From: Prasinococcaceae sp. CCMP 1430 | Lineage: Eukaryota > Plantae > Prasinodermophyta | DNA length: 64,000 bases | Assembly (NCBI GenBank): GCA_013416795.1 | Contig: RQSC01000001.1 | Location: forward strand, 101,378 to 165,377 | Direction of reading: 5' to 3' | Part shown: positions 7,645-40,423 of the stretch, one piece after another | Position numbering within the stretch: the first letter of the stretch is position 1 | How the letters are laid out: the number at the start of each line of letters is the position of its first letter | Position numbers and translations under genes: made by a program | Notes under the pieces: model-generated | Seen by the model: the letters and a program-made list of their open reading frames with translations, nothing else | Told to the model about the DNA's origin: nothing | The model's database searches: none

Positions 7645-8492
7645 CGCGGCGCAGCTGCGCGGGATGGGCTTCCCCGTGGGGGGCGGCGGCGGCGGGGCGG
7701 CAGCCGAGTGGGTCGCCACGGCCGCAGCAGCAGCCAGCAGCGGCGGCGGCAGCTGCGACGACGACGCGCTTGCGGCAGCGGCACTCGACTCAGACTTCGG
7801 GGCGGGAGGTGGAGCGGACGGCGCTGACGGTGCGGTCGGCGGCGGCCACGGCGCCGACGCCGGCAACAACATGCTGCCTGCGGGCGTGTCGGGGATGTTG
7901 CAGGGCGTGTTGAGCGTGCGCGTCGTCATGCAGGTGGATGAGGTGGTCGACATCGGCGCTGCCGCACGCGAGCGCTACGTGGGGTGCGACGGCGGCGCGA
8001 CGGGCGGCGCGCCTACGCCCGCCCGCGCTTCGCGCGTGCTGAAGCTGCGGCTCACCGATGGCGCACAGCGCGTGACGGCGGTAGAGTACAAGTGAGAAGC
8101 CGCAGCGACGCGCACAAGCGCGCGCTCATACAAGCGCGTGCGCACGCACTCGCTTCCACTCGCACCGCGTCTTCGCGAGTACGACTGTGTCGTCGAGAGG
8201 GCGCGGGGGAAGGGGGGGAAAGAGAGAGAGGGAAGCTGTCCGGGTGCGGTCGCGAGAGAGGCCGGTACGGACGCCCGTGGTTCGACCGGTATGATGGCGC
8301 GCACGTGCGGCGCGGCTTGCTGCTGCTCACACCAGACGTTGTGCGCGTGCTTGGCGGCCGGGTGAGTTTCCTCGAGGCCGCGCGTGTCGCGGCAGTAGAA
8401 GCGTGGAATGAGCCTGCGCGCGGGCGTGGGGTGCCGCGCGCCGAGAGGGCGAGGCGAGCTGCCGCCAGAGCGATGGGGGCGCCAGCGGGCGC

Positions 8493-8529
<37 letters not shown>

Positions 8530-9222
8530 CAGGAGCAGCAGCAGGAGCAGGAGCAGCAGTACCACCACCACCAGCGAGCGCATCCGCCGACGGAGCTGAC
8601 TGCACCCACGCAGAGGTACACGCAGGGACCGCAGCAACCCCAGCAATATCAGCAGCCACAGCAGCAAATTCGGCAGCAGCAACAGCAGCCATCAGCGCAC
8701 TTCAACACGCAGCAGCAGACGGCGCCGTACAACGCAACCAACACGAGAGATGTGGGGCGGCAGGGTGACGGTGCGGTGACGGTTGCGATGGTGCCCACGG
8801 GCACGTTCGCCTCCCTGGCGCCACCTGCCGTCACCGCGGTGCGCGTGCGCGCCCGCCTGAAGACATCGCATCGGCTGAGCACGAGCAAGGGCATCTACGA
8901 GCTGCGCGTGCTCGCTGAGGACAGCGCGGGCAACGTCACCGAGGCGCTGATCGCCTCTAGCATCATCGAGGAGCACGTGGGCGTGGCGTGCGCTGAGTTT
9001 GACCGCCTCAAGCGCGAGGCGATGGACGAGGCCAAGCGGCGCATCGCGCCGCTCCAGACTTTCTTGCGCGGATTCAAAGGTGCCATGGACGTGCGCGTGT
9101 CGCAGGACCTGCCCGTGCCGCTCATCACACGCATGGCACCGCTGCCCGAACATGAGGCCCCTCGAGGTGACGGCGGAGACGGCGGCCACTCCGACGCAGC
9201 GCACAAGCGCAGGCGCACATGA
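7645..9222 (+). CDS. RMI1: RecQ-mediated genome instability protein 1 (OB1 + polyQ linker + C-terminal OB); 5' in gap; intron 8092-8240 (acceptor visible only after in-place complementation)
   Basis: QVDEVVDIG, LKLRLTDGAQRVTAVEYK and RRGLLLLTPDVVRVLGGRV match the RMI1 N-terminal OB fold; the C-terminal region resembles RMI1_C. Confidence 0.85.
8165..8292. other. Segment complemented in place (not reversed) across the RMI1 intron/exon junction; left edge approximate
   Basis: The base-by-base complement gives GCTGAC (8182-8187), a pyrimidine tract and CAG (8238-8240). It then reads in frame (K)PTPALSPAMPAGTKLAI and joins DGAHVRRG. Confidence 0.9.
8494..8559 (+). repeat. (CAG)n / CAGGAG polyglutamine tract in RMI1 linker
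   Basis: Eleven uninterrupted CAG followed by mixed GAG/CAG units. Confidence 0.95.
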
Positions 9223-9314
9223 GAAGGACGCACATGAGGGCGACAGGCGGAGGACGCGGACAGAGAGTCTGACAATTTTTAATCAATAATGTACAGGAAG
9301 GACTGGTGTCCAGA

Positions 9315-12300
9315 TCACACGATCTCGTAGAGCTTCTTGAGCTTGACGACCAGCCGCCACGACTCCTTGTCCATCTCATCGACGAAATGCTCTTTGAGCA
9401 AGTCGATGCTCTTGCGCGTGATGAGCGACACAAGGTCGTCCGTGTGGTCGAAGTGGCGGCCGTACATGCGCGAGCTCTCGGTGGGGTTGGTGGGCTCGAT
9501 CTTCATGGCGACGCTCTGGCCGCGCGTTGCCCGGTCCACCGCTTTGTGCTCGCGCTCGATGGAGGCGATGCGCCCCAGCGTGATCTGGCCCTGCGACGGC
9601 ACGCAGATGGGCGTGCCGATGCGCGCTATGCCGTCGATGACGTCCACTCCCACCACGATGGGGTCCTTGCGCGTAAAGACACACGAAGGCAGGATGCGCA
9701 GCACGCAGGGGAAGGCCGCGTCACGCAGCGTCTCCTTCTTCTTCTGCGCCTTCACCTCCTTCATGTAGGCCGAAAACTGGTCGAACAGGTGGTAGATGAT
9801 GTCCGCGGTCATGATGCGCACGCCCATCTCCTTTGCCAGCTCGCGCGCGTCCTTCTTCACCTCGATGTCGAACGCCAGGATCACAGCGAACTCCGGCAAG
9901 CCGCGCGTGGCCATCATGCTCGCGCGCATGACGTCCTTCTTCGAGATTGGGCCGATGTTGACGCCGCACACGGGAATCTGCACGTCGTCCGAGCCCAGGA
10001 ACTCCAGAAGTGCCTCCAGCGAGCCAAGCGTCGACGCCTGCACGCACACGCCGTCGGCGGTCTTGTCCACGCCCTCGAGCACGGAGCTCATCTCGTTCTC
10101 GACCGTGTCGCGCAGCTCCTCCTCCGAGTCCTGGGAGCCCAGCACGTACAGCTGCGTGCCCGCGAGCGCGCTCTCCAGGTTGTTGGCCGCGAGCTTGACG
10201 CCGATGGCGCCTTCGATCTGCTTGTGGTGTTGGTAGCTGCCCTTCACGCGCATCTCCTTCATTGGGTGCGGCGTGAGGACGGCGCGCACCTGTGTGACGA
10301 TGGCGCCCTGCAAGCCACACACGAGGTGCCACAGCGGGAGGAACTACGCCGGCAACTGCTCCTACTGCAGTGTCCACCACGGTTCGGGGAGCTACCAGAA
10401 CTGAAGGTCGTGGCATGTGACGTCGCGCCCCCTCATGGTGTCGAAGAGACCAAGCATCTTGTACGTGAGATGCGACAGCATGTAGAGCAGGTCGGGAATG
10501 CCCTCGCCGGTAATAGCCGAGGTAGGCACCACGTTGACATAGCGACGCGAGTCGGGGTTCTCCCAGTACAGCGCAGCGTTGAGGCCCTGCTCGGCCAGCG
10601 CGAGGAAGGCCGCGTCCTTGCGCTTCTCGAACTCGAGCTGTGCGTGCTCCTTCTGGCCCTTGAGGGATTTGCGGAAGGAGCCGTTTGGCACCGCCTCCCA
10701 GTCGAAAATGCGGTCGCACTTGTTGAGCGCGACTACGAAAGGTGTCTTGCGCATCTTGAGCAGGTTGATCGACTCGATGGTCTGCTGCTCGAGGCCATGC
10801 ATGATGTCCACCACCAGCACGGCGATGTCACACAGGCCGCTGCCGCGCGAGCGCAGGTTAGAGAAGCTTTCGTGGCCGGGCGTGTCGATGACCAGCAGGC
10901 CAGGAATCTTGAGCGGTTCGCCCTCGAGGCAATCGGCGGCCTTCTCCTCGAGCGCCTCATGCGGCATGAAGGTAGCGCCGATCTGCTGGGTGATTCCGCC
11001 CGCCTCACCGTCCTGCACGTTGGTGTTGCGGATCTTGTCGAGAATTTTGGTCTTGCCGGTATCGACGTGGCCCAGGATGCAGCAAATGGGCGAGCGCAGG
11101 CGGTCGGCGCTCTTCAGCTTGCGCTGCTTGGCCTCCCGCGCCTCGCGGGCGGCGCGCGCCTCCGCTATCCGCTCCTCGCGTTCCTCCTCACTGTCTGTGC
11201 TGTAGTCGTCGCTGTCGGTGTCGCTGTAGTCATCGTCGCTGTCGCTGTCCGAGTCACTGTCCGAGTCGTCGCTGCCGGAGTCCGAGTCGGAGCCCGAGCC
11301 TGACTCTGAGCCCGATTCGGAGTCGGAGTCTCCCGACGCATCCTCGTCGGAGCCCTCATCTGAGGCCGCCTTGGCCTCCTCCTTGGCCTTCTCAGGCTCC
11401 TCGGGCGCCACGGTTTTGACCTCAGCGGTCTCCCAGTCCTCATCCTCCCAGTCGTCAGCTGCCTCCTCGGCCGCCTTGGCAGCCTCTGCCTCTGCCTCTG
11501 CTTTGGCCTTGGCCTCCGCCTCCGCCTTCGCCTCGGCCTCCTCGGCCTGCTTCTTCTCCTCGGCAGCCTTCTGCGCAGCGGCAATCTCCTCGGGCGACTT
11601 CTTCTTCTTCTTGCCGTACACGACCTTCTTGGGCTTGTCGGCGGCGGCCTCGACCTTGGCGCCCGCCTGTGCGAGCAGCGCCTCGCGCTGAGCGGCGAGT
11701 CGGCGCGCCTCCTCCTTCTGTTTGGCAGTCACAGCCACGCCCGCCTTGCGCTTGGCCTCGAGCTTCTCCTTCTCGCGCTGTTTCTTCGCCAAGCGCTTCT
11801 CCTCCGCCCGGCGCGCCTCCTCAGCTAGGCGCGCCTCCTCGGCCTCGGCGGCGAGGCGAGCCTCTTCCTCGGCGCGCTTGGCGGCCTCCTCGGCCGCCTG
11901 CTGCTTGGCAATGCGCTCGCGCATCTCGAGCACTGCCTTGCTCACCTTCTTCTCGGGCTTCTTGCCACTTGCAGCCGCACCCTCGTCGCCACCCTCAGCC
12001 GCCTTGGCCTTGGCCTCCTTCTCCTTCTGCTTCTTCTTGAGGCGCTTCTTCTGCGCGGCAGTGAGCTCCTTGGGCTCCTCGCTCTCCGCCGGCGCCTCGT
12101 CGCCGGCGCCGGCGTCCGCTTTGGCCGCCTCAGCAGTGCCCCCGGCGGCCTTGTCCTCCGCCTTGGCTTTGTCGTCGAGCTTCACACCATCGAGGTCAGC
12201 GAGCAGCGCATCAATGTCATCATCGTCGGCCTTCTTCGCCTCCTTCTTCTGCTTCTGCTTGAGCTTCTTCTTCTGCGCCTTGGAAAGCTTCGCGGACGGC

Positions 12301-13919
12301 TCGGGCTCCTTGGGGGCATCCAGGCTCGCCAGCAGGGCGTCGAGCTCCGCGTCCTCCTCCTCTTTCTTCGAAGACTTCTTCTTGCTTGACTTGGGCTCGG
12401 GCGTCGGCTCAGGCTCCGGGATCGGCTCGGGCCCAGGCGCCGTTGCCTTCTTGCCCTTCTTGCCTTTCTTTGCAAACACGCTCGACACCGCGGGCGTGTC
12501 CTCCTCGCTGCTGCTGCTGCTTTCAGCCGCCTGGGGAGGAGGGGCGGCCTTCTTTTTGCCTTTCTTGGCGAACACGCTCGCAGGGGCTGGCTCGTCGTCC
12601 TCGCTGCTGCTGCTGTCCGCTTTAGGCGCCGGCGCGCTCTTCTTCTTCTTCTTCTTGGCGAACACACTCGACGCCGCGGGCTTGTCGTCGTCACTGCTGC
12701 TGCTGCTGGTCTCGGCCACGGGCGCCTTCTTGCTCTTCTTCTTGCCGAAGACGGACGGCACCGCCGGCGCCGGCTCGGCCGCGTCCCCGCCCTTCTTCGA
12801 CTTTTTCTTCTTGAGCGCGCTCGCGGGCACGGTGGTGGGAGGTGCGCTGCCCACTTTCGCGTCCTCTGGCAGAATGGTTACGCCCGAGTAGTCGGCGTCC
12901 CAGCCCATCTCCGCGGCGCCGCAGAACATGCCGAAGCTGGCGACCCCCCGCAGATCGACCTTCTCGACGCGCAGGCCGGTGCCCGGCACAGTAGAGCCGA
13001 TGGGCGCGTATATAGTCTTCACGCCCTTCTTGGCATTGCCGGCGCTGGTGACCACCTGAAACCACGTGTCGGGCCCCACGACGGCTTTGCACACGCGCAG
13101 CTTGTCGGCGCCGGGGTGACGCTTGGCGGATGCGATCTCGCACACGACGAGCTTTGGAACGTACACTTCGTCCTCCTCGTCCTCCTCCGACTCCTCCGAC
13201 TCCTCCGACTCGTCGTCGGCGTCGTCGCCCATGAGCGCCGCGAAACCCGACTTGACTGGTGCGGGCTCCTCCTCCGACTCATCTTCCTCGTCGTCGTCGC
13301 CATCGTCGCCCATGAGGGCCGCAAATCCGCTCTTCGCGGGCGGGGCGGCGTCCTCCTCTTCCTCCTCCTCGTCGTCATCGTCGTCGTCATCGCCCATGAG
13401 CGCGGCGAAGCCCGACTTGGCCGCAGGGGGCTCGTCCTCCTCCTCCTCCTCTTCCTCGTCGTCTTCATCGCCATCGCCGCCGAGTGCGCCAAAGCCCGCC
13501 GGGAAGCCGCCCGCCTTAGGCGGAGGCGCCTCCTCCTCCTCCGACTCGGCGTCTTCCATGGCCTCGTCACTGCCATCCCCACCCATCAGTGCCGCGAAGC
13601 CGCCCGCCTGGGCCTTGGCGGGCTCGTCGTCGCTGCTGAAGCCCGCCGCGGCCTTGCCCTTCTTGCCCTTCTTCTTGGCGCGCTTGTCCTTCTTGGCTTG
13701 CGACTTGGACATGACGGGAGCGTCATCCTCCTCGCCGTCGCTGCCTTTGGAGGCGGGCGGCATCGGCACGTCGTCATCGCTGTCGTCGCCACCGCGCCCC
13801 TTCTTCCCCTTCTTGCCCGCCTTCTTCGCCGCGCGCTTCTCCTTGCGCGCCTGCGCCTTGGACTTCTCGGGCGCGCCGTCGCCGTCGCCGTCGCCGCCGC
13901 CGCCGGCGGGCGCGTCCGC
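9315..13919 (-). CDS. eIF5B: Eukaryotic translation initiation factor 5B; start in gap; 42 codons (10326-10451) readable only after in-place complementation
   Basis: G domain [46 protein letters not shown]; domains II-IV ([36 protein letters not shown]); long Lys/Glu/Asp-rich N-terminus. Confidence 0.97.
10326..10451. other. 126-nt segment complemented in place inside eIF5B domain II
   Basis: Reading the + strand backwards without complementing gives [42 protein letters not shown], in frame with both flanks. Confidence 0.97.
12838..13166 (-). other. tRNA-binding OB domain (bacterial PheT B2 / YtpR type) embedded in the eIF5B N-terminal region
   Basis: [23 protein letters not shown]...QVVTSAGN...[32 protein letters not shown] parallels the consensus HPNADKLxVC...GxKIKKxKLRGVxSxGMLCSxxELG. 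Confidence 0.9.
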
Positions 13920-14660
13920 NNNNNNNNNNNNNNNNNNNNNNNNNNNNNNNNNNNNNNNNNNNNNNNNNNNNNNNNNNNNNNNNNNNNNNNNNNNNNNNNN
14001 NNNNNNNNNNNNNNNNNNNNNNNACCGGCCGGCCGCCGCGCGAAACGCGATTTCGCGCCGCGCCGCCCTTTTCGGTCCGGCCTCGGCGCCACCGCCCTTT
14101 TTCCGCCGACCGCGCGTTTCGTCCGCCGTTCCGCCGAACGAAACAACCAATAATCAATCGCCCAGCCCAGGGTGGGTGGGTGGGTGCTCACCGACCGAGA
14201 GAAAGACAGAAGGGAGGGTGGGGGTGAGAGCCACCCACAGCCGGCCGCCGCACGCGATCCCAGCCAATTTCTCCGTTCCTTCCTTCCGCTTTCCCGCAGC
14301 CGATCGAGGCTCTTCGCCGTGCCCTCGGTCGACCGGCCGTGGCTGGCTGGCTGGCTGGGAGGAGATCTCGTCGTGCTTTCTTGCTTGACAGACAGACACA
14401 TCTTCCTCTGACTCTGCAGAGGCTGTGGCGCGGCGAGATCGCCGCCGCCGCCAGGGCAAGGAGTGGCCGGAGCTCCCCTGCTGCAGCAGCAGGAGCGGAT
14501 GGCAGCGGGCGAAGGGCCGTCATCAGGCCAGCAGGGGCCTCAGCACCCCCATCCAGCGGGATCGCGTATCAAACAAGGAGCAGCGTGCATGGAGTACTAC
14601 GACGGGACTACACTTCAGTGGCGTGGTGCACTGGCATGTCATTGGCTAGGGCTTGGATGG

Positions 14661-14697
14661 ACCCTAACCCTAAACATGCACCTGAATTCCAACCCTA
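14661..14697. promoter_or_regulatory. Telomere-like / telo-box motifs upstream of PheRS-alpha
   Basis: ACCCTAACCCTAAA at 14661-14674 and AACCCTA at 14691-14697. Confidence 0.4.
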
Positions 14698-14760
14698 GCC
14701 GGCGCTCGCGCCTGCGTTTTGGCCTGCGGCCGCGGCTGGCGGGCGCGCGCGCGCGGCCGG

Positions 14761-16248
14761 GCTGAGGCGGCGCTCCTGCGGGCGATCGACGCCGCCGGCG
14801 ACGGAGGCGGGGTCGACTCGCAGGCCTTCGCCGCCGCCGGCGGCTACGCGCACGGCGATGTGCTCGGCCTCGTGCGCTCGCTCGTCGCCGCGGAGATGGT
14901 GGCTGCGACGGACGTCGAGATCGTCACTTGGGGCCTCACCGCCGAGGGGCAGGAGTTCGTGGAAAAGGGCTCCGCGGAGGCGCGCGTGCACGCGGCGGTG
15001 CCCGCGGACGGCATCGAGCTCGCCAAGCTCAAGGCCGAGCTGGGCAAGCTGGCCGACGTCGGCCTGGCCAAGGCCATGCAGGCGAAGTGGCTGCAGATGC
15101 AGAAGGGCGAGGTGCCCATGGTACTGCGAAAGACGGACGAGATCGTTGACACCGCTCGCGAGCAGCTCCGTGCCGTCGCCGGCGGCGCCGAGCATGACAA
15201 GAAGACCATGGACCTGCTGAAGAAGCGCAAGCTCATCGCGGTCACCAAGTCGCGCAAGTTCGTGGCCAAGAAGGGCCCCGCGTTCGCGCTCGAGCGCGTC
15301 AAGTTCGCCACCGATCTGACCGCCGAGATGCTGCAGAGCGGCGCGTGGAAGGACGCCAAGTTCAAGGCGTACAACCTCGACACGCTCGGAGCGGCGCCCG
15401 ACAGCGGCGCGTTTCACCCGCTGATGAAGGTGCGCGCCGAGTTCCGCCAGATCTTCCTCGAGATGGGCTTTGCGGAGATGCCCACCAACAACTTCGTCGA
15501 GTCGAGCTTTTGGAACTTCGACGCGCTCTTCCAGCCGCAGCAGCACCCGGCGCGCGACGCGCACGACACCTTCTTTCTGAACGCGCCCGAGAAGGCCACC
15601 TCCTTCCCGGAGGAATACCTCGAGCGCGTGCGCAAGGTGCACGAGAGCGGCGGCTACGGCTCCTTCGGCTACAACTACTACTGGAAGCGCTCCGAGGCCG
15701 AGAAGAATCTGCTGCGCACGCACACCACGGCCGTGTCGAGCCGCATGCTGTACAAGCTGGCGCAGGAGGGCTTCCGGCCGCAGAAGTACTTCTCCATCGA
15801 CCGCGTCTTCCGCAACGAGGCCGTGGATCGCACGCACCTGGCCGAGTTCCACCAGGTGGAGGGTGTGGTGTGCGACCGGAACCTCAGCCTGGGCCACCTG
15901 ATGGGCCAGATTCGCTCCTTCTTCGAGCGCATCGGCATGCCCAGCGTGCGCTTCAAGCCCGCCTACAACCCCTACACCGAGCCCTCGATGGAGATCTTCG
16001 CCTTTCACCAGGGGCTGGGCAAGTGGGTGGAGGTGGGCAACTCGGGCGTCTTCCGGCCCGAGATGCTGCGTCCCATGGGGCTGCCGGAGGACGTGACGGT
16101 CATTGCGTGGGGGCTGAGCCTCGAGAGGCCCACCATGATCCTGTACGGTATCGACAACATCCGGGACCTCTTCGGCCACAAGACGGACCTGGACATGATC
16201 CAGAGCAACCCCATTTGCAGGCTGGGCATGGACGACGTGCAGGGCTGA
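14761..16248 (+). CDS. FARSA: Cytosolic phenylalanyl-tRNA synthetase alpha subunit; initiator ATG not visible
   Basis: [87 protein letters not shown]. Confidence 0.97.
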
Positions 16249-16370
16249 GCGGAGCCACTCACCCCCAAACTGTAAACATCGAGCGACTCATTATTACTAC
16301 CGCAATCTGCCTCTTCTAGCTATGAGCGCGATCTGAGACAGCTGCGAGCTGCGAGTGCTTGGTCTCCTCA

Positions 16371-17739: not shown

Positions 17740-17984
17740 GGCACGCGTTCGCGCGCGGGCGCGCCGAGCGGCGGCGCCGAGCGGTTGAACGGGCGCCGAA
17801 CCGCAGGCGGGCGCTGCCCCACGCGNNNNNNNNNNNNNNNNNNNNNNNNNNNNNNNNNNNNNNNNNNNNNNNNNNNNNNNNNNNNNNNNNNNNNNNNNNN
17901 NNNNNNNNNNNNNNNNNNNNNNNNNNNNNNNNNNNNNNNNNNNNNNNNNNNNNNNNNNNNNNNNNNNNNNNNNNNNNNNNNNNG

Positions 17985-20016: not shown

Positions 20017-23000
20017 ATGGCGCGCGCCGCCCATCCCTTCATGGCGGTGATCCTCGTGCGCCCCGCAGCGCGCGCGCCTGAGAGGACACAGGCGGGCACT
20101 CATCGCAGCGACAGCAGCAGCCTCGAGAGGAGGAGGCGGAGGAGGGGGGGGCGCAGCAGCAGGGCGCCACCGCGCGGCAGGTGGCTGGCGAGGCTGGTGG
20201 CGAGGCTGTTCGCGCTGATGTGCGCAGTGACGGCCCTTGTAGCCATGCCCCGTGCCCTCGCGCAGGCGAACGGCACCGGTGCGGAGCAACCCGCCCCCGC
20301 GCCCGCTCTCGCGCCTGTGCCAGCCCCGGGACCAGCACCCTTGCCTGCGCCAGCGCCCTCGTCGGGCCCGAGGCCCGCAGACGACAGCGACGGCGGAGGA
20401 CAAGGGACGGCTGCAGAACCACAGCCAGCTCCTGCCCCCGAGCCAGCACATCAGTCGGCTGGGGACGAAGAACATGGAAATGAGAATGGAGGCAACGCCG
20501 CAATGCCTCCTGTGCCTGCGCCTGGCCCTGCCGTGCCGGCATCGGGGCCGGCGCCTGCACAAGGACCGGCGCCTGCACAAGGACCGGCGCCTGCACAAGG
20601 ACCGGCGCCTGCACAAGGACCGGCGCCTGCACAAGGACCGGCGCCTGCACAAGGACCGGCGCCTGCACAAGGACCGGCGCCTGCACCGGGGCCTGGCCCT
20701 GCACAAGGACCGGCGCCTGCACAAGGACCGGCGCCTGCACAAGGACCGGCGCCTGCACAGGGACCTGCGCCTGCACCGGGGCCTGGCCCTGCCACAACGC
20801 CGCCGGCGCCGGCACCACGGCCGGCCCCCGAAGAGCCAGCGACGCCCGCGCCGGCGCCCGGTGCGGCTCCAGGACCTGCACCTGGTCCTGCGACGGACGA
20901 AGGCGTCGACATCGAGGTCACATACGAGCTGCCCCAGCCGGCGCCTGCCCCAGAACCGGGTGTGCCAACGCCCGCTGCTGCCGAACCGGCGCCCGGGCCG
21001 GCGCCTGGGCCCGCACCTCGGCCAGGCTACGAGTACGCCTACGGCGACGACGGCTTGGACGTGGAATTGGCAGCGCCAGAGCCGGCGCCCGCGCCCAAGC
21101 CAATGCCCGAGCCTTCACCCAAGCCCGCGCCCGCGCCCGCACCCGAGCCTTCGCCCGCGCCCAAGCCGGCGCCACTCACGCCGCCGCCTGCGCCGCCGCC
21201 GCCGCCCGACATCGCGGCCGTGCCCCGGTGGGACGGCGAGAGCGTCGTAGGTGCCGACCAGGCCGTGGTGGAGTTCAACGTGGACATGGGATGCGCGGGG
21301 CTCAACTTTACAGAGGTGTGGGTCACTGGCGCCTTCTGTGAGTGGTGCAGCCCGTACGGTGGTCCCTACGGTGGTGCCCTTCAGCTATTCAAGACAGGCG
21401 AGGACGCCAGCAGCGCCATCTTCTCGGGCAGCTTCGTCTTCGACGCTGACTCCATGAGCCTCAATGACGATGGCGAGCCGGCGGTGTTCTACAGGTATCT
21501 CGCTGACGGCTGGCAGCAACCCGAAGCACTCAACGCAATCGGCGGCGGCGGCAGCAGCGTCGAGATCGCTGGCAGCACCGTTGGGCCCACCAAGCGCCAG
21601 CAAGAGCAAACAGAGCAGTTTCCGACATCGGCGGCCGTCACCGAATGCCCATCGACGTCTGGCTCGGCCATATTCCCGCACAGGTCGGCGCTCGTTCAGT
21701 TCGCCGACAGCGTAAGCACGTCGGACACCTTCGGACGCTGTGCGCCTTGCGGCGACGACGGAGGGGCGGGGCCGCAGGTGCCCTCGCCCCCACCGCCGCC
21801 GTCAACTCCCCCCCCAACAAGCCCGCCTACCAGCTCACCCACAGTCGGCAGCAACAGTAGCAACGGTAGTAGCCCAGGCGGCAACAGCAGCAGCGGCGGG
21901 GGCACCGATCCCCCCATTGTGTACTACGAGGACGACGAGGCCCTGCCAGGCGCACCGATCGCTTCACCGACCGACGCGAGCGTGCAGCACCCGCACCCTC
22001 CTCCGAGCCCCCCGCTGCCGCCCGGCGATGGCGGCAGCTCCTCGGGCGTGCTGATTGGCGCAATCGCTGGCGCCGTCGCCGCAGTCGTTGCATTGGTCGG
22101 CGTCCTCGCGGCAGTGTTCGTGAGCAGGCGGCGCGCGCGCGCGCGCATGCTGGATGGTGCTGTTCCAGACATTGAGACTGGCGGTGGCAACGGTGCGCAC
22201 AGCAGCGGCGGCGGTGGCGCTCCGGTGACGCAGGGCAGGAGCCCCAAAGCAACGAAGTCGAGCCACCACACGCAGACCGGCGAAGGCATGAGCAGCGCGA
22301 AGGGCGCCAAAAACCACAGCAGGAGCGACGACAACAGCAGGCATCTCGGAGCAATGGTGGGCAGCTTCCTCAGCGGCCTTCTCGGCAGGAGCAAGGGCGA
22401 CGACGCCTTCCATTCCGCGGGCGAGATCACGCTGGGCAGTCGCGTGCTTGATATCCCCAACCACAAGATTGGCCCAGGCTCGCCCGGCGGTCACGGCGTG
22501 AGCCCGCGACCGCTCCGTCGCCATTGGGCCATCGACTACTCGCAGCTCGACTTCGGCGAGGGTGAGCCACGGCGGCTGGGACGTGGCGCGTACGGCGAAG
22601 TCCTGTGCGCGCGCCTCAACGGCACGCGCGTCGCTGTCAAGCGCTATCACATGTGGGAGCACGAGGAGCTCGTGGGGCTCTCGGACGACCCCGCGCAGCC
22701 CCATCACCACAGCGGCGCCGAAGGGAGGGATCTCAGCAGCGCCGCTGCGGGGCAAGGGGCCTCGGTGTCTCTGAGCGCGCAGGGGGAGCGCGGCAGCACG
22801 CAGCGCGACGGGAGTCCAGGCGAGGCGGTGCGCGAAGTGGAGCCGTCGTTCGCCTTCGAGGAACTCCACGCCGATGCGATGCAAGCGCGCGCGGAGGAGC
22901 GCCACGTGGCTGACGTTCGCGCCTTCGAGCAGGAGATGGAAACGCTGGCGCGGTTGCGCCATCCGAACATAGTCATGTTCATCGGGGCGTGCGTGGCGCC

Positions 23001-23643: not shown

Positions 23644-25475
23644 CGCATGGGAGCGCACTTCAAACAACTTTTGTATGTATTTCGACGATTTGCATGAGGA
23701 CCACTGCTGTGCACGGCGCGGAGATGTCAAGCAGCAGAGCGGACTGGCTGCGACGAGCAGGTGGTGTAACATTGCGAAGCCAAATTATTTATCTGCGGTA
23801 TGCCCACTCATCCCCGCAGCACGCCTGCGGCGCTAGCAGCTCCGAGTCAGGAGGACCCGCTCACTTTGGTACGCATGTTCGCTTGCCGGAGCGCTCGCGA
23901 GCTCCCCAGGTCGCGGCCGCGCGGGCGCAGGGCCTAGTGCGCGCGCGCGCGTTCGGGCGCTCGCTCGCTCGCTGCATGGGGAGTGCGTGACACCCCGGCC
24001 CTACCCCCTGCAGCGCCCCAGCGTTGCTGCCCCAACGATGTGCCACCCCCGTCGCCGCGACGCACTTTTCAAAGGATTCGAGGCGGTGCGCGCCCTCACG
24101 TCAAAACGCATTAGAACGTGTTGACGAAAAGGACAAGACAAAACGCTCCAGTCTGCGTCCTGGTTGAGCAGTTCCCCACGGTGCTTTGACAGCTTCTGTG
24201 GCCTTTGTCGTCGCTGCCGGGGAATCCTCATGTCAAGTTGACATGGACATGTCGTTCGTTCGCCCCACCACAAACCTGCGCGGCAGCCAGCACGCGACAC
24301 TCTCGCTTCCCTGCGTGGACAGCGGTCGGTGCCGCCTCGCCACAGCTCACCCCGCTCGTCTACTTCCCCCCGGTCCCCCCCCCCTCGGTCGGTCGGGCCC
24401 CCCACGTCGCCTCGCGCCGCTTGGTCCCACGGCGTGCACACTCGACGCGACGCGCAGGCTGCCGACCGAGGAGCTCGGTCGTTGCCCCCTGCTGGCGCCG
24501 CGCGCGCGCGCGCGCGCGCGCGCGCGCTCCCGCCGNNNNNNNNNNNNNNNNNNNNNNNNNNNNNNNNNNNNNNNNNNNNNNNNNNNNNNNNNNNNNNNNN
24601 NNNNNNNNNNNNNNNNNNNNNNNNNNNNNNNNNNNNNNNNNNNNNNNNNNNNNNNNNNNNNNNNNNNNNNNNNNNNNNNNNNNNNNNNNNNNNNNNNNNN
24701 NNNNNNNNNNNNNNNNNNNNNNNNNNNNNNNNNNNNNNNNNNNNNNNNNNNNNNNNNNNNNNNNNNNNNNNNNNNNNNNNNNNNNNNNNNNNNNNNNNNN
24801 NNNNNNNNNNNNNNNNNNNNNNNNNNNNNNNNNNNNNNNNNNNNNNNNNNNNNNNNNNNNNNNNNNNNNNNNNNNNNNNNNNNNNNNNNNNNNNNNNNNN
24901 NNNNNNNNNNNNNNNNNNNNNNNNNNNNNNNNNNNNNNNNNNNNNNNNNNNNNNNNNNNNNNNNNNNNNNNNNNNNNNNNNNNNNNNNNNNNNNNNNNNN
25001 NNNNNNNNCGCTCGCGCGCGCCAGCGTGGCGCACGCGCCGCGGCCCGCGACGCGAAAAAACGCCCCCCGAAATCGCCCCGGCGAACGCCCCCCGGCGCCC
25101 TCGGAAAACCCTCCGCCCGCGCGCACGCTCGCGGGGTTCTCGCGCGCGCACGTCCGCGCTTTTACCGTCGCCGCACTTTTTCGCGCTCTCCGCCCGTTCG
25201 CGTTCGCGTTCGGTTCCCGCCGACGCGACGCCGACGCCGGCGCGACGAATTGGCGCCGCGGGGGGGCGAAACGGACGGGCGTTCCGAGGGACGGGGGGGC
25301 GAGGCGCGACCGGAGCGGGCACGCGCGGGCGGGATCTCCCCGCGTTTCGCGGGGATGAAATGGGGGAAACGGGCCGCGCGCGCGCGCGCGCGCGCGCGTG
25401 CGCTTCCTCCGCCTGCTGCCCCTGGCGNNNNNNNNNNNNNNNNNNNNNNNNNNNNNNNNNNNNNNNNNNNNNNNN

Positions 25476-30541: not shown

Positions 30542-30857
30542 AGGAGATTGATTGGACGCCTGAGGAGAAGGAGCCGCGCGTAGCGCACTCGAGAGCGTGC
30601 CAGCGGCGGCACACAAAGCAGTGTAAACGATAGGACAGCATCCATCCTTTTGTCGACAGGGAGTGGGCCACGGCTCCACCGGCTACGCTGGCGGCGCCCG
30701 TTTGCACCTGCACCCGCATGACCCTCGCGCGGCAGAGGCGCTCGCGCGCTGCTTGGCGAGCCTGAGCGAGGTGCACGCGCGAGCTCCGGAGCGCCAGAGT
30801 GCCGCGTGCGGAGTTCGGAGTACAAAAATGGTACATGCGCGTCGCCACGCGCCTTTG

Positions 30858-31573
30858 CTATGCGCGCTTCGCCTCGTAGACGTCCGAGTCGAGCACCATT
30901 CGATGTGCGTCCCGTCCAGGCGCGTAGTAGTCCTTCACAGCGCCGTCGACCCGCCAGCCAAGCTTGGCGTACAGCGCCGCGGCTGGCTGCCGCGCAGGGT
31001 CGACGTGCAGGTTGATGCACATGACGCGGCGGGCGCCAAACAGGTGCTCGACCGACGCGCGCAGGACGGCCTCGCCGATGCCCTTGCGGCGCGCATGCTC
31101 AGCGACAACCAGCTTCGCCACGGAACCGGCCAGGCTGCGCCACTCGATGACCGCGTAGCCGAGCACGTCGGGGCCCGCGCGGCCGCAGTCGTCGGCCGCC
31201 GCGCCACCCCCGAGGGAAGTGGCGAGAACGAGAGCTGCATTCGGCTGCCGGCGCGCGAGAGCGGCGCGGGGGCATCGCGCATGACCGACTGTCAGCAACG
31301 CGGCGAGGCAGACGGCTGGGCGGTCGAAGGACTGACGCGTGCCGGGGCATGTGGTCCGTCGTACGGCAGCGCGCCTGGCGCCCCGCGCCCTCCGACCTTG
31401 GCCGCAGCCGACGCCACCCCGCCAACCGCGCTGAGCGCCTCGTGCTTTGGGAACGAGCGCCGTTCGATGGCGTCGCACTCTCTCAGGGCGGCCGCGTGCC
31501 GCGCGCCGGCCTTGCCGCGCAGCGCGGCGCCCTCGACGAGCGCAACCGCGTACGCCGCCCCGTCGATGCCGCC
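30858..31573 (-). CDS. GNAT family (RimI-like) N-acetyltransferase; intron 31245-31396; 5' in gap
   Basis: Exon 1 DAIERRSFPKHE; exon 2 VLGYAV, KLVVAEHARRKGIGEAVL (motif A), LHVDPARQPAAALYAKLGW, DYYAPGRDAHRM. Confidence 0.9.
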
Positions 31574-31708
31574 NNNNNNNNNNNNNNNNNNNNNNNNNNN
31601 NNNNNNNNNNNNNNNNNNNNNNNNNNNNNNNNNNNNNNNNNNNNNNNNNNNNNNNNNNNNNNNNNNNNNNNNNNNNNNNNNNNNNNNNNNNNNNNNNNNN
31701 NNNNNNNN

Positions 31709-33834
31709 CGGCAGCGCGCCGCGGACGGAGGCGGGGAGGCGGGGGAGCGCTTCGCGTTCGAGGGCGTGGCGCGCGCGTACGGTGCCGAGGGCGCCGCCGC
31801 GCTGCGCCGCGCACGCGTCGCCGTCGTGGGCGTTGGTGGCGTGGGCTCGTGGGCCGCTGAGGCGCTCGCCCGCACGGGCGTGGGCTCCATCACGCTCGTC
31901 GACCTCGACGAGGTGTGCGTGTCCAACGTCAACCGCCAGGCGTACGCACTCACCTCGACGGTGGGCAGGCCCAAGGTGGACGTGGCCGCGCAGCGCATTG
32001 CCGACATTAACGCCGAGTGCGACGTGCGGTGCGTGCACGACTTCGTGAGCGTTGAGAACGTGAGCGAGCTGCTCGCGCCGCCTCTCGACTGTGTGGTGGA
32101 CTGCGTCGACGACTTCCGCGTCAAGGCGGCCATCGTCGCGCACTGCCGTCGCGTGGGCGTGCGCGTGGTCACCACCGGCGGCGCGGCAGGCGCCGACAAC
32201 GCCGCGGCGGTGCGCACGGACGACCTCGCGCGCGCGCAGCAGAACCCGCTGCTCGCCAAGACGCGCAAGGAGCTTCGCGCGCGCTACCGGTTCCCTGCGG
32301 CGCGCGGCGGTGGCAAGACGCCCAAGAAGTGGGGCGTGCCCGCCGTATATCCGCCGCAGGACGCGAACTCCGTCGCCACCGCGCACAAGGGCGGGCGGGC
32401 GGGCGGCGGGCGCATGTCCTGCGACGCGCTCGGGGGCTCGTTGTGCTTCGTCACTGGCGCACAGGGATTCGTCGCCGCTGGCGAGGCCGTCAACGCCATC
32501 GTGAGCGGGGCGGCGCAGGCGCGCGGCGTGGAGCGCGGGTCGGAGGCGGCGCCGGCGGCCGCAGGGGAGGCAAGCGCCAGGCGCGAGGCCGCGCCCGGCG
32601 CGCAGCCGGCGACTGAGGAATTGCGACTCGCGCGGCAGGGACAGCAGGGAGCTGGCGGCATGGACCCTTCCGGAACTGCGCAGGGCGCTCGCGTGCAGGC
32701 GGAGGCGGAGGTCTCGGATCTGCGCGCGGACCCGGCGCTGGTGGCGGCGTCGTACGACGCGCACTGCCACGCGCACCTCGACGACACTCACGAGGGCGTG
32801 GCGGCAATGGAGTCGCTGTTCGAGAGGGTGTCTGGCGTCGCGCTGATGTCCACTGGCGAGGGCGACTGGGACAGGATACAGGCCGCCGCGGCGAAGGCGC
32901 GCGCGGGCGGGAGTGCGGGCAGCGTGCGATGCCTGCTCGGTGTACACCCGTGGTTTGCCCACAGGTACGCCGGGGAGGGCGACGGCTGGCTCGAGGACCT
33001 GCGCGCTCGCTTAGTGGGAACGCCTGGTGCGTGCATCGGCGAGATCGGCCTCGACAAGCAGTGGGTGACCCCTGACACAGGGCGCGTAGAGTACGACGCT
33101 CAGCTCGAGGTCTTCAAGGCGCAGCTCGAGCTCGCCGCGGAGCTTCGCCTTCCGGTGAGCGTGCACTGCGTGCGGGCGCAGGGAGACCTGCAGGCGATAC
33201 TGTCGGCGGCAAAAGCATTGCCGCCGACCATCTACCTGCACGCGTTCGGTGGGGCGGTGGGCACCGTCCAGCAGCTCTGCAAGTCGAAGAAGTTCGGCGA
33301 CAGGTGCGCGCGCGCGCGCGCGCGCGCGCGCACTGAGGCGGCACGTTGCGCGCGCGTTGTGCGCTGCTCGTCTGACGGCGCCTGCGCGATGCGATGCCAG
33401 GCTGTACTTTGGTTTCGCGCACTGCGTCAACATGCGCTCGAAGAAGACGCCGGCTGTGATCGCCGCTGTGCCACCCGACAGGCTGCTGCTCGAGAGCGAC
33501 CGCGGCTCGGCGGCGGAAAAGACCGCGTGCGGCGACGCCGAGGTCGATGCGGAGCTCGATGCCATGCTCAGGGTATACGCCGAGGTGAGGCGCGCACAGC
33601 GGCGCCCGTAGCTGCTGCGGCACGTGCAACGCAACGCACCGCACGCAATGCGCTGACCTCTTTCTGTTTGTTTGTGCCCGCGCACCGTGCGCGCCCGCCG
33701 CCCCCCGTTGCGCGCAGGCCACGGGAACGCAGCCCGAGGAGGTCGCGCGGCGGACAGCCGCCAACGCCGTGAGCATGTACGCCCCGGCGGACGAGGCCGA
33801 CGCGACGCTCGGGCGAGCGCACGCGGCAGCGTAG
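31709..33834 (+). CDS. Fusion of a TcdA/CsdL-like ThiF (E1-like) domain and a TatD-family nuclease; introns 33304-33400 and 33585-33717; 5' in gap
   Basis: ThiF: VVGVGGVGSWAAEALARTGVG, DLDEVCVSNVNRQ. TatD: DAHCH, GVHPW, IGEIGLD, LPVSVHC, LHAFGG, LLLESD. The two domains share one uninterrupted exon. Confidence 0.9.
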
Positions 33835-34425
33835 CGCGACGCAAGCTCGTAACCACTCGCATCGCTCGGAGACTCTCTCTCGTACGCGCACAATGACAGC
33901 ACTGCGCTTCCGCGCCCCACCGTCCCGCTCCTTTTCCCCCACCCCCACCCCCACCCACGCCGCTCCCTGGCCCACCCACTGCCGCTTTCGGCACACGCGA
34001 GCGCGCCGCCGGCTCCTTGGCGACGGCCCTCGCCTCGCATTCTCCCCCCCGGCGCCCGCCGTGTGGGCGGCCTCGTCGATGGCGTCCTCTCAGCCTGTGC
34101 TGCCCGCCAGACACCGGACACACACACACACGCGTGCGTGTACAGTGTACTGTACTGCACGCATTCATTTTGATATATATAGGGTACATTCGTCGATCAG
34201 GGTTCATGTTTGATATGGGTTTGCTTGTCGCAACATAGTTGCGGTACAGGTAGCAAAGAGTTTCGACATTTTCCGGCAGCGCCAACACAAGCACCACGTA
34301 TGACACTCGCTGACAATGTGACCATCCGCAGGCTGTTGGCGGGGAGGTGCCGAGGGGCCCACACCGAGCGCGCCGTGCGCCCGCCCGCTCCGCCCGCACA
34401 CCTCGCGCGCCCCGTCGCGCGCAGG

Positions 34426-36117
34426 CGCGTCCCCCTCCCCTATTACTCTGAGCTCGAGCAGACGTGCCAGTCCATCCTCGGCCTGCTCAACGACCACCTC
34501 GTCCGCGGCGGCGGCGCGGCGGCGATGTCGAAGCATCGCATCAGGCTGCGCGTGCAGAATGCGGTGGCGGGCGGCGTCGACGCGCTGCACGACGCGCCGC
34601 CCTTTGAGACCAACCGCGCGGCGGCGGAGGAGCTCTTCGCGCTGTGCGCGGCGCTGGAGGCGGACGCAGGCAGGGCGCAGGCGGCAGCCACCAAGGCGGC
34701 CGAGGCGCTCGCCAGGCTCGCCAGCACCGCCACGGCGGTGGACGACGCACTCGGCTCGTTGGTGCTGTGCCCTGACAGCAACGTCGCCAGCGGCGGGCCC
34801 GCAGGGAGCCCTGCCGCTGGTGCTGGCGCCGGCGCAGGCGGCGGCGCCTCCGCGGCGTCGCCGGGCAAATTCTGCTGCGGAGAGGGCGCGCTGGGAGTCA
34901 AGGAGGGTGGCAGCTCCCCCGCGACGCCTCAGGTGTCCTCGCACGCAGGAGAGAGCGCTACACGGAGCACGACGGGCGTGCTGCACTCGCTGGCGTCCGA
35001 GCTGGCGAGCTACGCGGAAGATCTGGCTGTGTGCGTGGTCGACCCGTGCGCAGCGGCGAAACTCGATCAGCAGTCAATCCGCGCGCTTCACGCCGCATTC
35101 ACCGACCGCAAGCTGGACGTGACGCACTACGAGACCAAGGTGGTCGGCCTCACTGCGACGCGAGACGAGCTGGTGAACAACCCGGACCCGAAGATTGCCG
35201 TTGGATCAAAGGCCGCTGCGGCGAAAGAGAAGCTCGCCGCGAACGAGCAGAAACTGGCCGCCGCCCGCGCAGCGCTGCAGGTCGCCGAGGCGGAGGCGAT
35301 GGACGCCACGGAATCGGCTGCCTCCGGCGTACCCAAGGGCCTCGCGGCCTGCGTGGGCGCCATGCTCGCGCGCCAGGCGCAGCTGGGCGCGCGCGTTGCC
35401 AACGCGGCCGGGGCGCTGGTGGAGCAGGGCGCGTGGCAGCTGCAGAAGATCGCAGCGGCGGTGCATGCGGGCCCCGCCCAGCCGGCCGCGCAGCGTATCT
35501 TGGAGGTTCTGGACGAGCAGCAGGAGGATGAAGCTCGCCGCGCCATGGCGCAATCCAAGGCCATGCGCGAGGCCCTTGGTAGCCCCGCCGCCGGTGGAGG
35601 CGCCCAAGAGTTGGTCGCCGCCGCCGAAGCGCGCGCCGACGATGCCGAAAAGCGTGCTGAGGATTTGCGGTCGCGCGTCGAGGCGCTGACGCTCCAGCTC
35701 GCCGACGCACACGCTGTGGGGGCGGGGAAGGCGGTAGCGGGTTCCGTCCACTCGATGCGCAGCGGGGGCGGCGACGGGAGCGCTACGGGCAGTGTGATCG
35801 AGTGGCCTGGTCCGCAGCAGCCGGCACCGAACCCCTTTGAGGCGCGCGACGTGGCGGCGTCCAGCCCCGGGTCTGAGGGCTCGCCGCCGCAGGCGCAGCC
35901 GCAGCCGCAGGCCAGTAGTCCGTCCTACGCAGAGGAGAGGCCCGCCTCCTCGTTACACGCGGCGCAAGAGATCGAGCCTGCGCCGCGCAACGACGGCGAT
36001 GATGCCAACCCTTTCAGTGAGCCCCAGCAGGACGACGCCAATCCCTTCGCAGACGACAGCAACCCGTTTGCGGCCGGCGTGGACGAGCAGGAGTGGAGAG
36101 GGCCGAAGTCTTTCTGA
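34426..36117 (+). CDS. BAR-like coiled-coil protein with C-terminal NPF motifs; 5' structure uncertain (ATG 34525 possible)
   Basis: Helical region DRKLDVTHYETKV...KEKLAANEQKL resembling BAR helix 2/3; four NPF tripeptides in an acidic tail. Confidence 0.6.
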   Translation, partial: RVPLPYYSELEQTCQSILGLLNDHLVRGGGAAAMSKHRIRLRVQNAVAGGVDALHDAPPFETNRAAAEELFALCAALEADAGRAQAAATKAAEALARLASTATAVDDALGSLVLCPDSNVASGGPAGSPAAGAGAGAGGGASAASPGKFCCGEGALGVKEGGSSPATPQVSSHAGESATRSTTGVLHSLASELASYAEDLAVCVVDPCAAAKLDQQSIRALHAAFTDRKLDVTHYETKVVGLTATRDELVNNPDPKIAVGSKAAAAKEKLAANEQKLAAARAALQVAEAEAMDATESAASGVPKGLAACVGAMLARQAQLGARVANAAGALVEQGAWQLQKIAAAVHAGPAQPAAQRILEVLDEQQEDEARRAMAQSKAMREALGSPAAGGGAQELVAAAEARADDAEKRAEDLRSRVEALTLQLADAHAVGAGKAVAGSVHSMRSGGGDGSATGSVIEWPGPQQPAPNPFEARDVAASSPGSEGSPPQAQPQPQASSPSYAEERPASSLHAAQEIEPAPRNDGDDANPFSEPQQDDANPFADDSNPFAAGVDEQEWRGPKSF

Positions 36118-36517
36118 GCCAAAAGCAGATCAGAGACGTCGTTTGCATTCGTTGCCCAGCAACAGCACTGCTCTAGTGCGTGCCAACGTTTGGCGAGTCG
36201 CGGCGGCGGATCTCCCTTTTAGGATGGGTCGTGACCGGCACTGAACTGAAAAAGTTTTCTCTCTCTACACGTCTGTGCGTACACAGATGAGGCCGGAAGT
36301 GTCCGGGGGTAGTGGCTAGTGGCAGTGGTACGGTGGTACGCAATAGTAGCTAGCATTTTCCTCTAGACACGCCCGGCCGCGTCGCAACCCAGTCTCTTGC
36401 CTGTCCCTCGTTCCATCCATGGCGCGAAGGGCGTGTGGCGCTGAGCGGGCGATACGCCCCGCCCGCTCGGCTGCCTGCCCTCCGCCTGCCCTCTCCAACA
36501 CTGCGCCCTTGCGTCGA

Positions 36518-38673
36518 TCAAGGCGACTTCACGACCTGTGCGTCGAGCACGCCATCCGCATCGCAGTACTTGGGAGCCTGCGGGTGGTGCGTGTCGAGCC
36601 ACATCTGCATCTGCTGGATCTGGTGACTCTGCGTGACGATGATCTCACGCAACAAGTTCTCCACGTTCAAGGCCTCGCTGTCCCATCCGGCGGCGACCTG
36701 ACCGAACTGCGGGGCCGGGGCGCGCGCGAATGCAGCAGTCACACGGCGAAGCGAGTGGATGGGGGCGTCGCACACCGCTCGCGTGCATTAGCATCACCGC
36801 GCAGAGGCATCGGGCGCGCGGGCGACGCGGAAAGAAACGCTAATAGGCACCATGCGGGGCGATGTGACCAGGGAGCTTGAGGGAGGGCGAAGGGCGTCGC
36901 GCTGCGCACCTTGAGCGCGATCTTGCTCATCTCGATGGCGTTCAGGTGGTGTGGTATCATCTGGTGCATGAAGAGGGTCAGGGTGTTGTCGGTCTCCTCG
37001 ACGCGCATCTCGTAGTTCATCTTGCAGCCTATGGCCTGCATGCAGTTGCTGAAGATGTCGTCTTGGGGGTCGCACAGGAACTTCTGGTCGGGACAAAACT
37101 CGTCGGCGCGGTAGTGGAAGTCCGAGATGTTGCCGGTTCCGCACGCCTGGTCGAAGTCGCTCTGGGGCGGCCCGTAGTACTCCGCGGGGTCCCAGGGCTC
37201 CGTCAGCTCGTTGGCGAACGGGGGCGGATCGGCGACGTTGATGGCGCCGGTCATGCCCGAGTGGACGTGGCAGTAGTAGAAAAGCTGTTTCGTGAGCGAG
37301 CCCAGCGGAATGGTCAGCTTGGTCGAATACTGGTTCTTCTCCCACTCCTCGAAGGGTTGCTTGAACGAAGGTACGTAGTTGTCCAGCCGGCTGATGATGT
37401 CGTTGGCCACGGTTTCGAGGGTCTGGCACACGCCGTTGACGCAGTGCAGCGGCACCTGCACGATGCCCACCCCCGGGTCGCACATCCATTCCGAGGCCGT
37501 GCAATCGGCGGCCGCCTTGGGAGCGCAGGGGTCGCTCGCGTTGGTGCCGGCAGCGCTGGAATGCTGCTCGCCGCCGGCGCCATGAGCGCCGCCGGTTGCG
37601 TCCCCGCCGTGCATGCTGTGGTCCTGCTGCAGGCGGCGCCTGTGCCCGAACGTGGCGAAGTCATCGTTGTGGTCGTGGGTGTGGTCCTGTGCGTCGGCGG
37701 ACGCCTCCTGCTGCTGCTGCGGGCCGCCAAGCGCCGCGCACGCGGCCGGGTCCTTCACGGACGAGCCGTGGGTGTGGTGCGCGTGGCCGGACGCCCCAGG
37801 CACCGTGAGCTCGGGGGCGCCGATGTACGCAGCGTCGGGATAATAACCGAAGGCCAGCGGATGCATCCAGTTGTTGGGCGCGCTCTGCACGAACTCGTAC
37901 TCGACGCCGCGCACCATCACGAGCGCGGGGCTCACGCCCTCGCAGCCGATCACGCGATAGGCGCCCGACATGGACGTCGTTCGCGCGAAGTCCACGTCGA
38001 ACCAGAATCGGTTGTTGCTGTCGGCGTTGCACGGCAGGCCCGTGTTGGACGGCGGCTCTTCCGCATCCGCGCTCGCGGCCTGCTCCGCCGTGCTCGCCGC
38101 GGAGGAGTGGCCCGCTCCGGAGGCGCCGTGCTGCTGCTCGTGCACCATCGGAGCGGGCTTTGGCGCCTGCGCGGAGTGCGTCATGTCGCCGTGGTCCATC
38201 GTCGCGCCGTGGTCCATCGTCCCCGGCTCCGTCATGTCGCCGTGGTCCATCATCGCGCCGTGGTCCATCGTTCCATTCCCCTCCTCCTTCGTCTCCGGCT
38301 CGTTCATGTCGCCGTGGTCCATCATCGCGCCGTGGTCCATCGTCCCATTCTCCTCCTCCTTCGTCTCCGGCTCGTTCATGCTGCCGTGGTCCATCATCGC
38401 GCCGTGGTCCATCGTCCCATTCTCCTCCTCCTTCGTCTCCGGCTCGTTCATGCTGCCGTGGTCCATCATCGCGCCGTGGTCCATCGTCCCATTCTCCTCC
38501 TCCTTCATCTCCGGTTCTTTCATCTCACCTTGGTCCATCATCGCGCCGTGGTCCATCCCCCCGTGGTCCATCTCCGTTCCTGGAGCCATCGACTCGGCGG
38601 AGGTGCGCACGGCCGCGCCGAGCACCAGCAGTACAGCGGCGCAGCTCGCCGCGCGGCGCATGCCCGCGGCCAT
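36518..38673 (-). CDS. Secreted Met/His-rich protein with a cupredoxin-like copper motif and C-terminal DUF305 domain; intron 36707-36909
   Basis: Signal peptide; MDHG repeats; NNWMHPL and FYYCHVHSGMTGAINV; DUF305 FMHQMIPHHLNAIEMS and IIVTQSHQIQQM. Confidence 0.85.
38170..38575 (-). repeat. 72-bp coding tandem repeat (EENGTMDHGAMMDHGSMNEPETKE) with internal 18-bp MDHG subrepeats
   Basis: Unit recurs at 38281, 38353 and 38425, with truncated copies at both ends. Confidence 0.95.
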
Positions 38674-38694
38674 TGCCGTCGCCCCGCCCCTCCC

Positions 38695-38820
38695 CTCCCT
38701 CGCCGCCAGTGGTCCGCCGCCGGCGCTCGCCCCTCGGGCGCTCACGAACGGGCCGCGCCCGCTGACTTTTTCGCCCTTTTTTTTCGACGGACGGCGCAGA
38801 TACCGATCGCCGCGTCGCTC
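38695..38820. other. Probable third in-place complemented segment covering the RPN3 start codon; left edge not determinable
   Basis: In-frame TACCGATCGCCGCGTCGC at 38801-38818 complements to ATG GCT AGC GGC GCA GCG (MASGAA), which runs into SLRAAAALV. No other ATG lies in the intergenic space. Confidence 0.6.
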
Positions 38821-40423
38821 GCTGCGCGCCGCCGCCGCGCTCGTGCGGCGCTCGATCGCCGCCAAGGAGGCGTTCCTCGTGCAGCGCGCGCTGCGCGCGA
38901 CCGCCGCGGCGAGGCGCAAGGGGCTGCTCAAGGAGGACGAGGTGGGGGCGTTCGCGGGGAAGGCCATCGGCGACGGATCGCCGCTGAAGGCCTCGCTCGA
39001 CGCCGCGCTGCCGCAGGTGAGCGCCGCGGCGCTCCCCGCGTGCCCCCGTTGGCGCGCACGCGCTTGCGCGCGCGAATAGATCCTGCCGCGAAAGATCTCC
39101 GCTCGCGCGCGCCAGCGCAGCCGGCCGCGCGACCGCCCGTGCCCTTCGCCGTGGCCGTGCCCTAGCCCATGCCTGCGCCCGTACCCACCCCTGCCAGCAT
39201 GCAGCGCTCGTGAGATCTGACGGAGCGCGCGCCACCAGGGGGATGCGTCCATGGGCGAGGATGGCGGTGAGGCCGCCGAGGCCGCCGAGCCCGCCGAGGC
39301 GCTGCCCGAGGTCGACGCGTACGTCGCGCTGTGCGGCGTGACCGCGCTGATCGACGCGGGCAAGGTCGAGCAGGCGCGCTCGCTGGTGACGGACGTGGTG
39401 CAGTGGCTGCAATCATCGGTGAATCGGCGCACGATGGACGTGCTCGCTTCCCGCCTGTACTTCTACTACAGCCTCGCGCACGAGAAGCTGGGCCGCCTCG
39501 CTGAGATCCGGCCGACGCTGCTCGCGTTGCATCGCTCCGCCGCGGTGCGGCACGACGAGTCGGGCCAGGAGATGCTGGTCAACCTGCTGCTGCGCAACTA
39601 CCTGCACTACTCGCTCTACGACCAAGCGGAGAAGCTGCGCGCGCAGGTGGAGCAGGGGAGCGGCGGCCAGGGCAGCAACCAGCAGCTCTGTCGCTACATG
39701 TTCTACATGGGGCGCGTGCGCGCGGTCGCGCTCGAGTACTCCGAGGCGAAGGAGTGCCTACAGCAGGCGCTGCGCAAGGCGCCGCAGGCAGGCGCGCTCG
39801 GCTTCCGCGCGGCATGCAATAAGTGGCTGGTGGTGGTGCAGCTGCTGCTGGGCGAGGTGCCCGAGCGCTCCGTCTTCCGCCAGGAGGGGCTGCAGGCGGC
39901 GCTCGAGCCCTACTACCGCCTGGCGTTCGCCGTGCGCCAGGGCGACGTGCAGGAGTTCGAGGCCGCCGCGGCGGCCAACGTGCGCGTCTTCCAGCGCGAT
40001 CGCGTGCACAACCTCATCGTGCGACTGCACCGCACCGTGCTGCGCACGGGCCTGCGCAACCTCAGCCTGGCGTACTCGCGCATCTCCATTGCGGACGCCG
40101 CGGCCAAGCTTGGCCTCTCCGACGCCGACGCGGAAGACGCCGAGTTCATTGTCGCAAAGGTGATCCGCGACGGCGGCATCGACGCGCGCATCGATCGCGC
40201 GACGGGCACGATTATCAGCAGCGAAACGGCGGGCGTGTACGACACCGCCGAGCCCCAGGCGGCTTTCCACAGCCGCATCGCCTTCTGCCTCAACCTCCAC
40301 AACGACGCAGTCAAGGCGATGCGCTATCCGCCCGACGCCTACAAGGCAAAGCTCAAGGAGCTCGAGAGCCGCAATATGCTCGACATGAGCGAGCTCGAGG
40401 ACGAGCTCGACGACGATTTCTGA
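38801..40423 (+). CDS. RPN3: 26S proteasome non-ATPase regulatory subunit 3 (PCI domain); intron 39017-39238
   Basis: NRRTMDVLASRLYFYYS, NLLLRNYLHYSLYDQAEKL, SNQQLCRYMFYMGR, LAYSRISIAD, EPQAAFHSRIAFCLNLHNDAVKAMRYP. Confidence 0.97.

Follow-up and report, generated by a model that had tools for sequence, protein, structure and literature searches.

The two strands of DNA are antiparallel and the known polymerases and repair pathways copy from 5' to 3', so that a rearrangement yields reverse complements only. A natural DNA inversion resembles the blocks described here in being a sharply bounded segment unlike the ancestral arrangement, but it gives a reverse complement, whereas in these blocks the order of the bases is kept and the bases are complemented only. 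A second point of comparison comes from the chiral "sequins", reverse-order synthetic DNA that serves as a sequencing control (PMC6430799); a natural sequence written in reverse order is, on the other strand, its in-place complement. Our literature search for such patches inside a published eukaryotic assembly found none, only synthetic mirror-order controls.

Here we examine a 64,000-nt stretch (hereafter the window) of contig RQSC01000001.1 from the prasinodermophyte alga Prasinococcaceae sp. CCMP 1430. An initial annotation, made from the sequence alone, had proposed that three conserved genes, eIF5B, RMI1 and RPN3, each carry a segment of about 126 nt that is correct only when every base is replaced by its complement and the order is kept. 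Comparison with DNA of the same species from independent sources upholds the first two segments and replaces the third by a different kind of fault. The two upheld blocks are almost certainly errors of the written sequence, produced by a wrong strand operation on a short correct piece, and not biology.

Methods

Two contigs served as the main reference for the eIF5B and RMI1 region: L001, an ENA metagenome contig (ERZ842040), and L002, a Tara scaffold of 6951 nt (ERZ28654620) that spans the whole stretch between two N gaps, 7645-13919. They come from different projects and represent wild populations about 1% away from the window, to which they are ~99% identical in the flanks of the blocks. 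Contigs of the same species from the Tara and Logan collections were found with the main RPN3 exon, and L025, from the neighboring locus, via a His-rich DUF305-like gene on the minus strand. Altogether, 23.3 kb of the window is covered by same-species contigs, at 7645-13919, 31709-44351 and 59404-63779. The RPS13 contigs L026-L031 were left out as reference because they belong to a sister species (89% identity). As a detector free of any reference, we computed for each 100-nt stretch the log-likelihood under a strand-symmetric Markov model (orders 2-5) against that of the reversed order. Mirrored reading frames, in register, were also scanned for codon usage.

Results

The first block lies in eIF5B (Table 1). 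A base-by-base comparison shows that both L001 and L002 are the same-direction complement of the window here, at 125/125 positions, and that the flanks are identical to these contigs, with the register unchanged, up to the very bases that adjoin the block. In the alignment of L001 with the window, both sides of the block align at 99.1-99.7% and exactly 125 nt are left unaligned. L003, a contig from a relative (86% identity), matches this block only once the window is complemented (86.7% complementary). The minus-strand eIF5B frame is broken as written, and complementing the block in place makes it continuous, with a typical domain II. A protein search with the piece of eIF5B upstream of the block found P0001, a 98%-identical protein from an ENA metagenome whose cluster also includes sequences from Tara Oceans and JGI samples; P0001 continues across the block without interruption and agrees with the complemented translation at 660/668 residues. 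The initial annotation had recognized the complement correctly but had placed it at 10326-10451, with a length of 126 nt (+/-2); its borders were wrong by 1-2 nt, which accounts for the sole mismatches to P0001 near the block, two border codons.

Table 1. Position of the complemented blocks, the genes concerned, the N gaps and the false join in the window
Feature	Position	Strand	Remarks
Complement-only block 1	10325-10449 (125 nt)	-	eIF5B domain II; three in-frame stops as written
Complement-only block 2	8166-8291 (126 nt)	+	RMI1; complement of L002 at 124/126
RMI1 gene region	7645-9222	+	N-terminal exon ends near 8092; intron continues into block 2
eIF5B gene	9315-13919	-	Essentially one exon; from ORFs, homologues, Pfam domains and alignment with the L002 gene
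N gap hiding the eIF5B start	13920-14023		L002 1-163 unmatched beyond the gap
Other N gaps	31574-31708, 17826-17983, 24536-25008, 25428-25475
False join or deletion	38803-38840		Short GC-rich repeat; switch within 38821-38840; not a complement block
RPN3 gene	38822-40423	+	5' end truncated in the assembly; Pfam families for RPN3

The second block lies in RMI1, for which RMI1_N and RMI1_C calls adjoin eIF5B on L002 and L001. The in-place complement of window positions 8166-8291 matches the Tara scaffold L002 at 124 of 126 positions and both flanks are in register, so that the segment proposed at ~8165-8292 stands, with slightly corrected borders. It consists of ~75 nt of the 3' end of an intron, with its pyrimidine tract and acceptor, followed by 51 nt of exon (17 codons) that belong to the OB-fold exon of RMI1. 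The gene as written thus loses its splice acceptor and these 17 codons. The change spans intron and exon and is not confined to the coding message, as it would be under RNA-level recoding or editing; a block that runs across an intron-exon border cannot reflect a process of decoding or one at the RNA level.

Once complemented, the blocks depart from the contigs at 0/125 and 2/126 positions, like their flanks (~1%), which implies that they hold the strain's own sequence in the wrong sense. Chance would match 25% of the bases, so that the complement match of block 2 is not fortuitous. The exact register with the flanks, already described in the initial annotation, is confirmed for both blocks by a constant offset against L001 and L002. 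Contaminating mirror-image spike-in DNA would be an exceedingly improbable source: although such reverse-order molecules are in use as controls, sequins mirror chosen human or reference sequences, not the eIF5B and RMI1 of an alga, and a spike-in would not sit in perfect register within a native locus and its flanks. The probability that the blocks are ordinary DNA inversions, that is, reverse complements, is practically nil. Inversion would account for the sharp borders only; the contigs match the complemented window position by position in the same register, where an inverted segment would match only after reversal, and when the contigs are compared by BLAST with both strands of the unmodified window, the 125 and 126 nt of the blocks stay unaligned.

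Both sites are normal in independent DNA: L001, L002 and the less closely related L003 show this for eIF5B, each from its own assembly, and one assembly does so for RMI1. This bears on the idea that the blocks are real in the sequenced strain, as same-direction complements generated by an undescribed process and perhaps read in some special way. If true, it would imply a new way of making such DNA and of reading through it in eIF5B and RMI1. We consider it extremely improbable, since a same-direction complement cannot arise given the polarity of DNA synthesis, the normal sequence is present in wild DNA both of this species and of a sister species, and the strain would have to live with three stops in eIF5B and with an RMI1 devoid of its splice acceptor, in a block that crosses an intron-exon border. 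Moreover, plain errors occur elsewhere in the same assembly. The preference of the initial annotation for a software transformation over biology therefore gains support: natural same-species DNA is normal at both blocks and, as written, essential genes are destroyed.

In the 23.3 kb covered by contigs, no further complement block was found beyond these two. Exact look-up of five further ORFs of the window in the protein collection retrieved none, and the stretches at 14-31.5 kb and 44.4-59.4 kb stay without reference cover; a scan of JGI metagenomes with PheRS gave best matches that were 51-64% identical and no same-species contig. The reversal-likelihood scan placed the two blocks in ranks two and five. 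The other minima, at 36294, 44113 and 60249, were rejected as blocks because Tara contigs show the normal sequence there; the method is hence not specific enough for non-coding DNA. Positions 45941-46041 are a strong outlier in the same scan. The codon-usage scan, after tuning, recovered only block 1; its other hits were low-complexity repeats, namely a CAG run (8474-8613) and a PAPAQG repeat (20505-20791). Truncated Pfam matches in Spo11 and in a kinase had looked like possible hidden blocks and turned out to be an ordinary intron and a kinase insert, respectively.

The start of eIF5B falls into an N gap. On L002 the gene occupies positions 86-4777 and the alignment with the window begins at position 164, which places the start codon and the first 26 codons inside the gap at 13920-14023. 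The 163 nt by which L002 extends past the edge of this gap find no match on the far side in any orientation, nor do the 495 nt by which it extends past the edge of the gap at 7567-7644. Both gaps must then exceed their written length, unless the sequences on either side are not collinear. Under the former reading, more than 104 nt are missing at 13920-14023. The end of L025 lies 40 nt inside the gap at 31574-31708. No N run touches any of the three sites in eIF5B, RMI1 and RPN3. The eIF5B gene also encodes a PF01588 tRNA-binding domain (12838-13166), a domain listed for most of its top homologues, the named ones being green algae. The initial annotation had called the domain bacterial-like; PF01588 appears to belong to the usual green-algal architecture of eIF5B and not to be peculiar to this gene.

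The third site, in RPN3, has a different structure. A complement block had been proposed at about 38695-38821; complementing this segment gives few matches to the contigs, and no local alignment is obtained in any of four orientations. The ATG seen in the complemented segment was a chance match of seven codons. A protein from same-species contigs (P0247) is identical to the main RPN3 exon of the window. Eight contigs (L004, L010, L011, L014, L017, L020, L021 and L022) align in normal orientation from exactly 38803 onward, and for the 77-823 nt that they carry upstream the window has no counterpart in any of the four orientations. The true N-terminus, MEVDAPEKK..., is encoded on these contigs and matches that of an 81%-identical full-length relative (P0127). 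From the other side, L025 aligns normally over 31709-38840 and then runs on for 185 nt that are missing from the window. The window accordingly switches from one locus to another across a GC-rich string of ~20 nt at 38821-38840, and RPN3 loses its start codon along with ~95 nt of coding sequence. On this evidence the site is a false join, or the collapse of at least about 1 kb.

A comparable breakpoint is found at 63779/63780, where L032 and L033, two independent contigs of the same species, align normally from ~59500 to 63779 and then diverge completely. It lies in a GC-rich stretch just upstream of an ATG at ~63843 and is probably another false join without Ns at the 5' end of a gene. Such joins bear on a further alternative, namely that the public assembly is correct and the complement blocks entered the sequence only after deposition, either when files were handled or as synthetic edits made on purpose as a test. 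A one-line script would give exactly such an edit, and the eIF5B protein search returned no annotated protein of the window's own genome. Yet false joins nearby are typical assembly faults and would be odd companions for planted controls. In addition, the EukProt protein P0246, identical to the RPN3 of the window, begins only at an internal Met, as would be expected if public gene models had been built on an assembly already lacking the RPN3 5' end. We therefore judge an edit after deposition to be quite unlikely and continue to favor an error in the assembly itself.

Several other irregularities were noted along the way. The local identity profile along the contig alignments revealed one other odd place, 34423-34503, where ~80 nt differ from L025 (which has ~69 other bases there) and are neither the same nor complementary; it lies just upstream of an ATG at ~34515, the window version looks coding, and either a polymorphism or an incorrect fill could account for it. 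At 43737-43771, two pieces of the L020 alignment overlap in the window but are separated on L020 by ~313 nt (its positions 4983-5294), an indication of repeat collapse, or of an indel, in the 5' part of an eIF4G-like gene. The minus-strand gene at 36742-38676 encodes a secreted His-rich protein with MDHG-type repeats that has no Pfam match at E 0.001, has homologues with DUF305 (PF03713) and, at 645 aa in the window against 596 aa in the Tara copy, varies in repeat number. In the sister species (L026, 89%), Spo11 is located downstream of RPS13, 3 kb away and on the same strand; in the window (54216-60199) it is ~4 kb upstream of RPS13, on the opposite strand, with three N gaps in between. This may reflect either a real rearrangement between species or an error of scaffold orientation.

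The RPS13 exon of the window is identical (115/115) to the EukProt Prasinoderma coloniale protein PRCOL_00005655 and distinct from the sister species with the 89%-identical contigs; the genome is thus apparently that of P. coloniale. The window differs from the Tara contigs by ~1%, the contigs among themselves by 0.05-0.8%, and in the one exon tested both differences between window and contig (2/2) fall on third codon positions. The window is a normal member of the species, with base calls that are otherwise sound. Its N gaps vary in length, joins run across strings of ~20 nt, and its appearance is that of a scaffold assembly from short reads or of a heavily patched version. The published genome of P. 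coloniale is described as gap-free, assembled from PacBio reads with NextDenovo, polished with Arrow and NextPolish, and resolved into 22 chromosomes (PMC7455551). Such a genome does not obviously fit an origin by gap closing, and the window may therefore stem from another assembly or version.

Discussion

The two blocks in eIF5B and RMI1 are best explained by a post-assembly step that put a short correct piece into the scaffold reversed or complemented instead of reverse-complemented. A reverse-complement piece that is merely reversed, or a forward piece that is merely complemented, gives an in-place complement with exact length and register, as observed here. Candidate steps would include gap filling, a local re-assembly or polishing patch, and the placement of a small contig in minus orientation. 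As for the program or step, we infer, with a leaning, gap closing or patching of a short-read scaffold assembly, because N gaps of varied length together with false joins free of Ns are typical products of aggressive gap closure; the other faults of the window, its gaps and false joins, would point the same way. Against a model in which the lengths of gaps set those of the blocks, the two are nearly equal (125 and 126 nt), which hints at a fixed unit such as a read length. The initial annotation had tied a length of 126 nt to a common Illumina read length; the measured lengths come close to it, and the tie to read length is not established.

The consequences concern data quality only, and more precisely assembly quality control. 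With eIF5B, RMI1 and RPN3 broken in the assembly, gene models, orthology assignments, selection tests and claims of absent genes are all affected. The signature can be searched for mechanically, by aligning the in-place complement of an assembly to transcripts, related genomes or metagenome contigs, and a genome-wide list of blocks obtained in this way would make it possible to correct the record.

Compared with known systems, the blocks differ from sequins (PMC6430799), which are designed, free-standing molecules, in being embedded in register in a native locus. They occur in company with faults that resemble gap-closure and overlap-merge misassemblies, namely the GC-rich join of ~20 nt that deletes the RPN3 5' end, the breakpoint at 63779/63780 and the N gaps that are too short; such misassemblies, however, are classically deletions, duplications or foreign inserts, not complemented sequence. 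Strand-handling errors in sequence processing are the process whose signature is the same as that of blocks 1 and 2: conserved length and register, every base swapped, borders that are sharp, and a sequence that complementing puts right.
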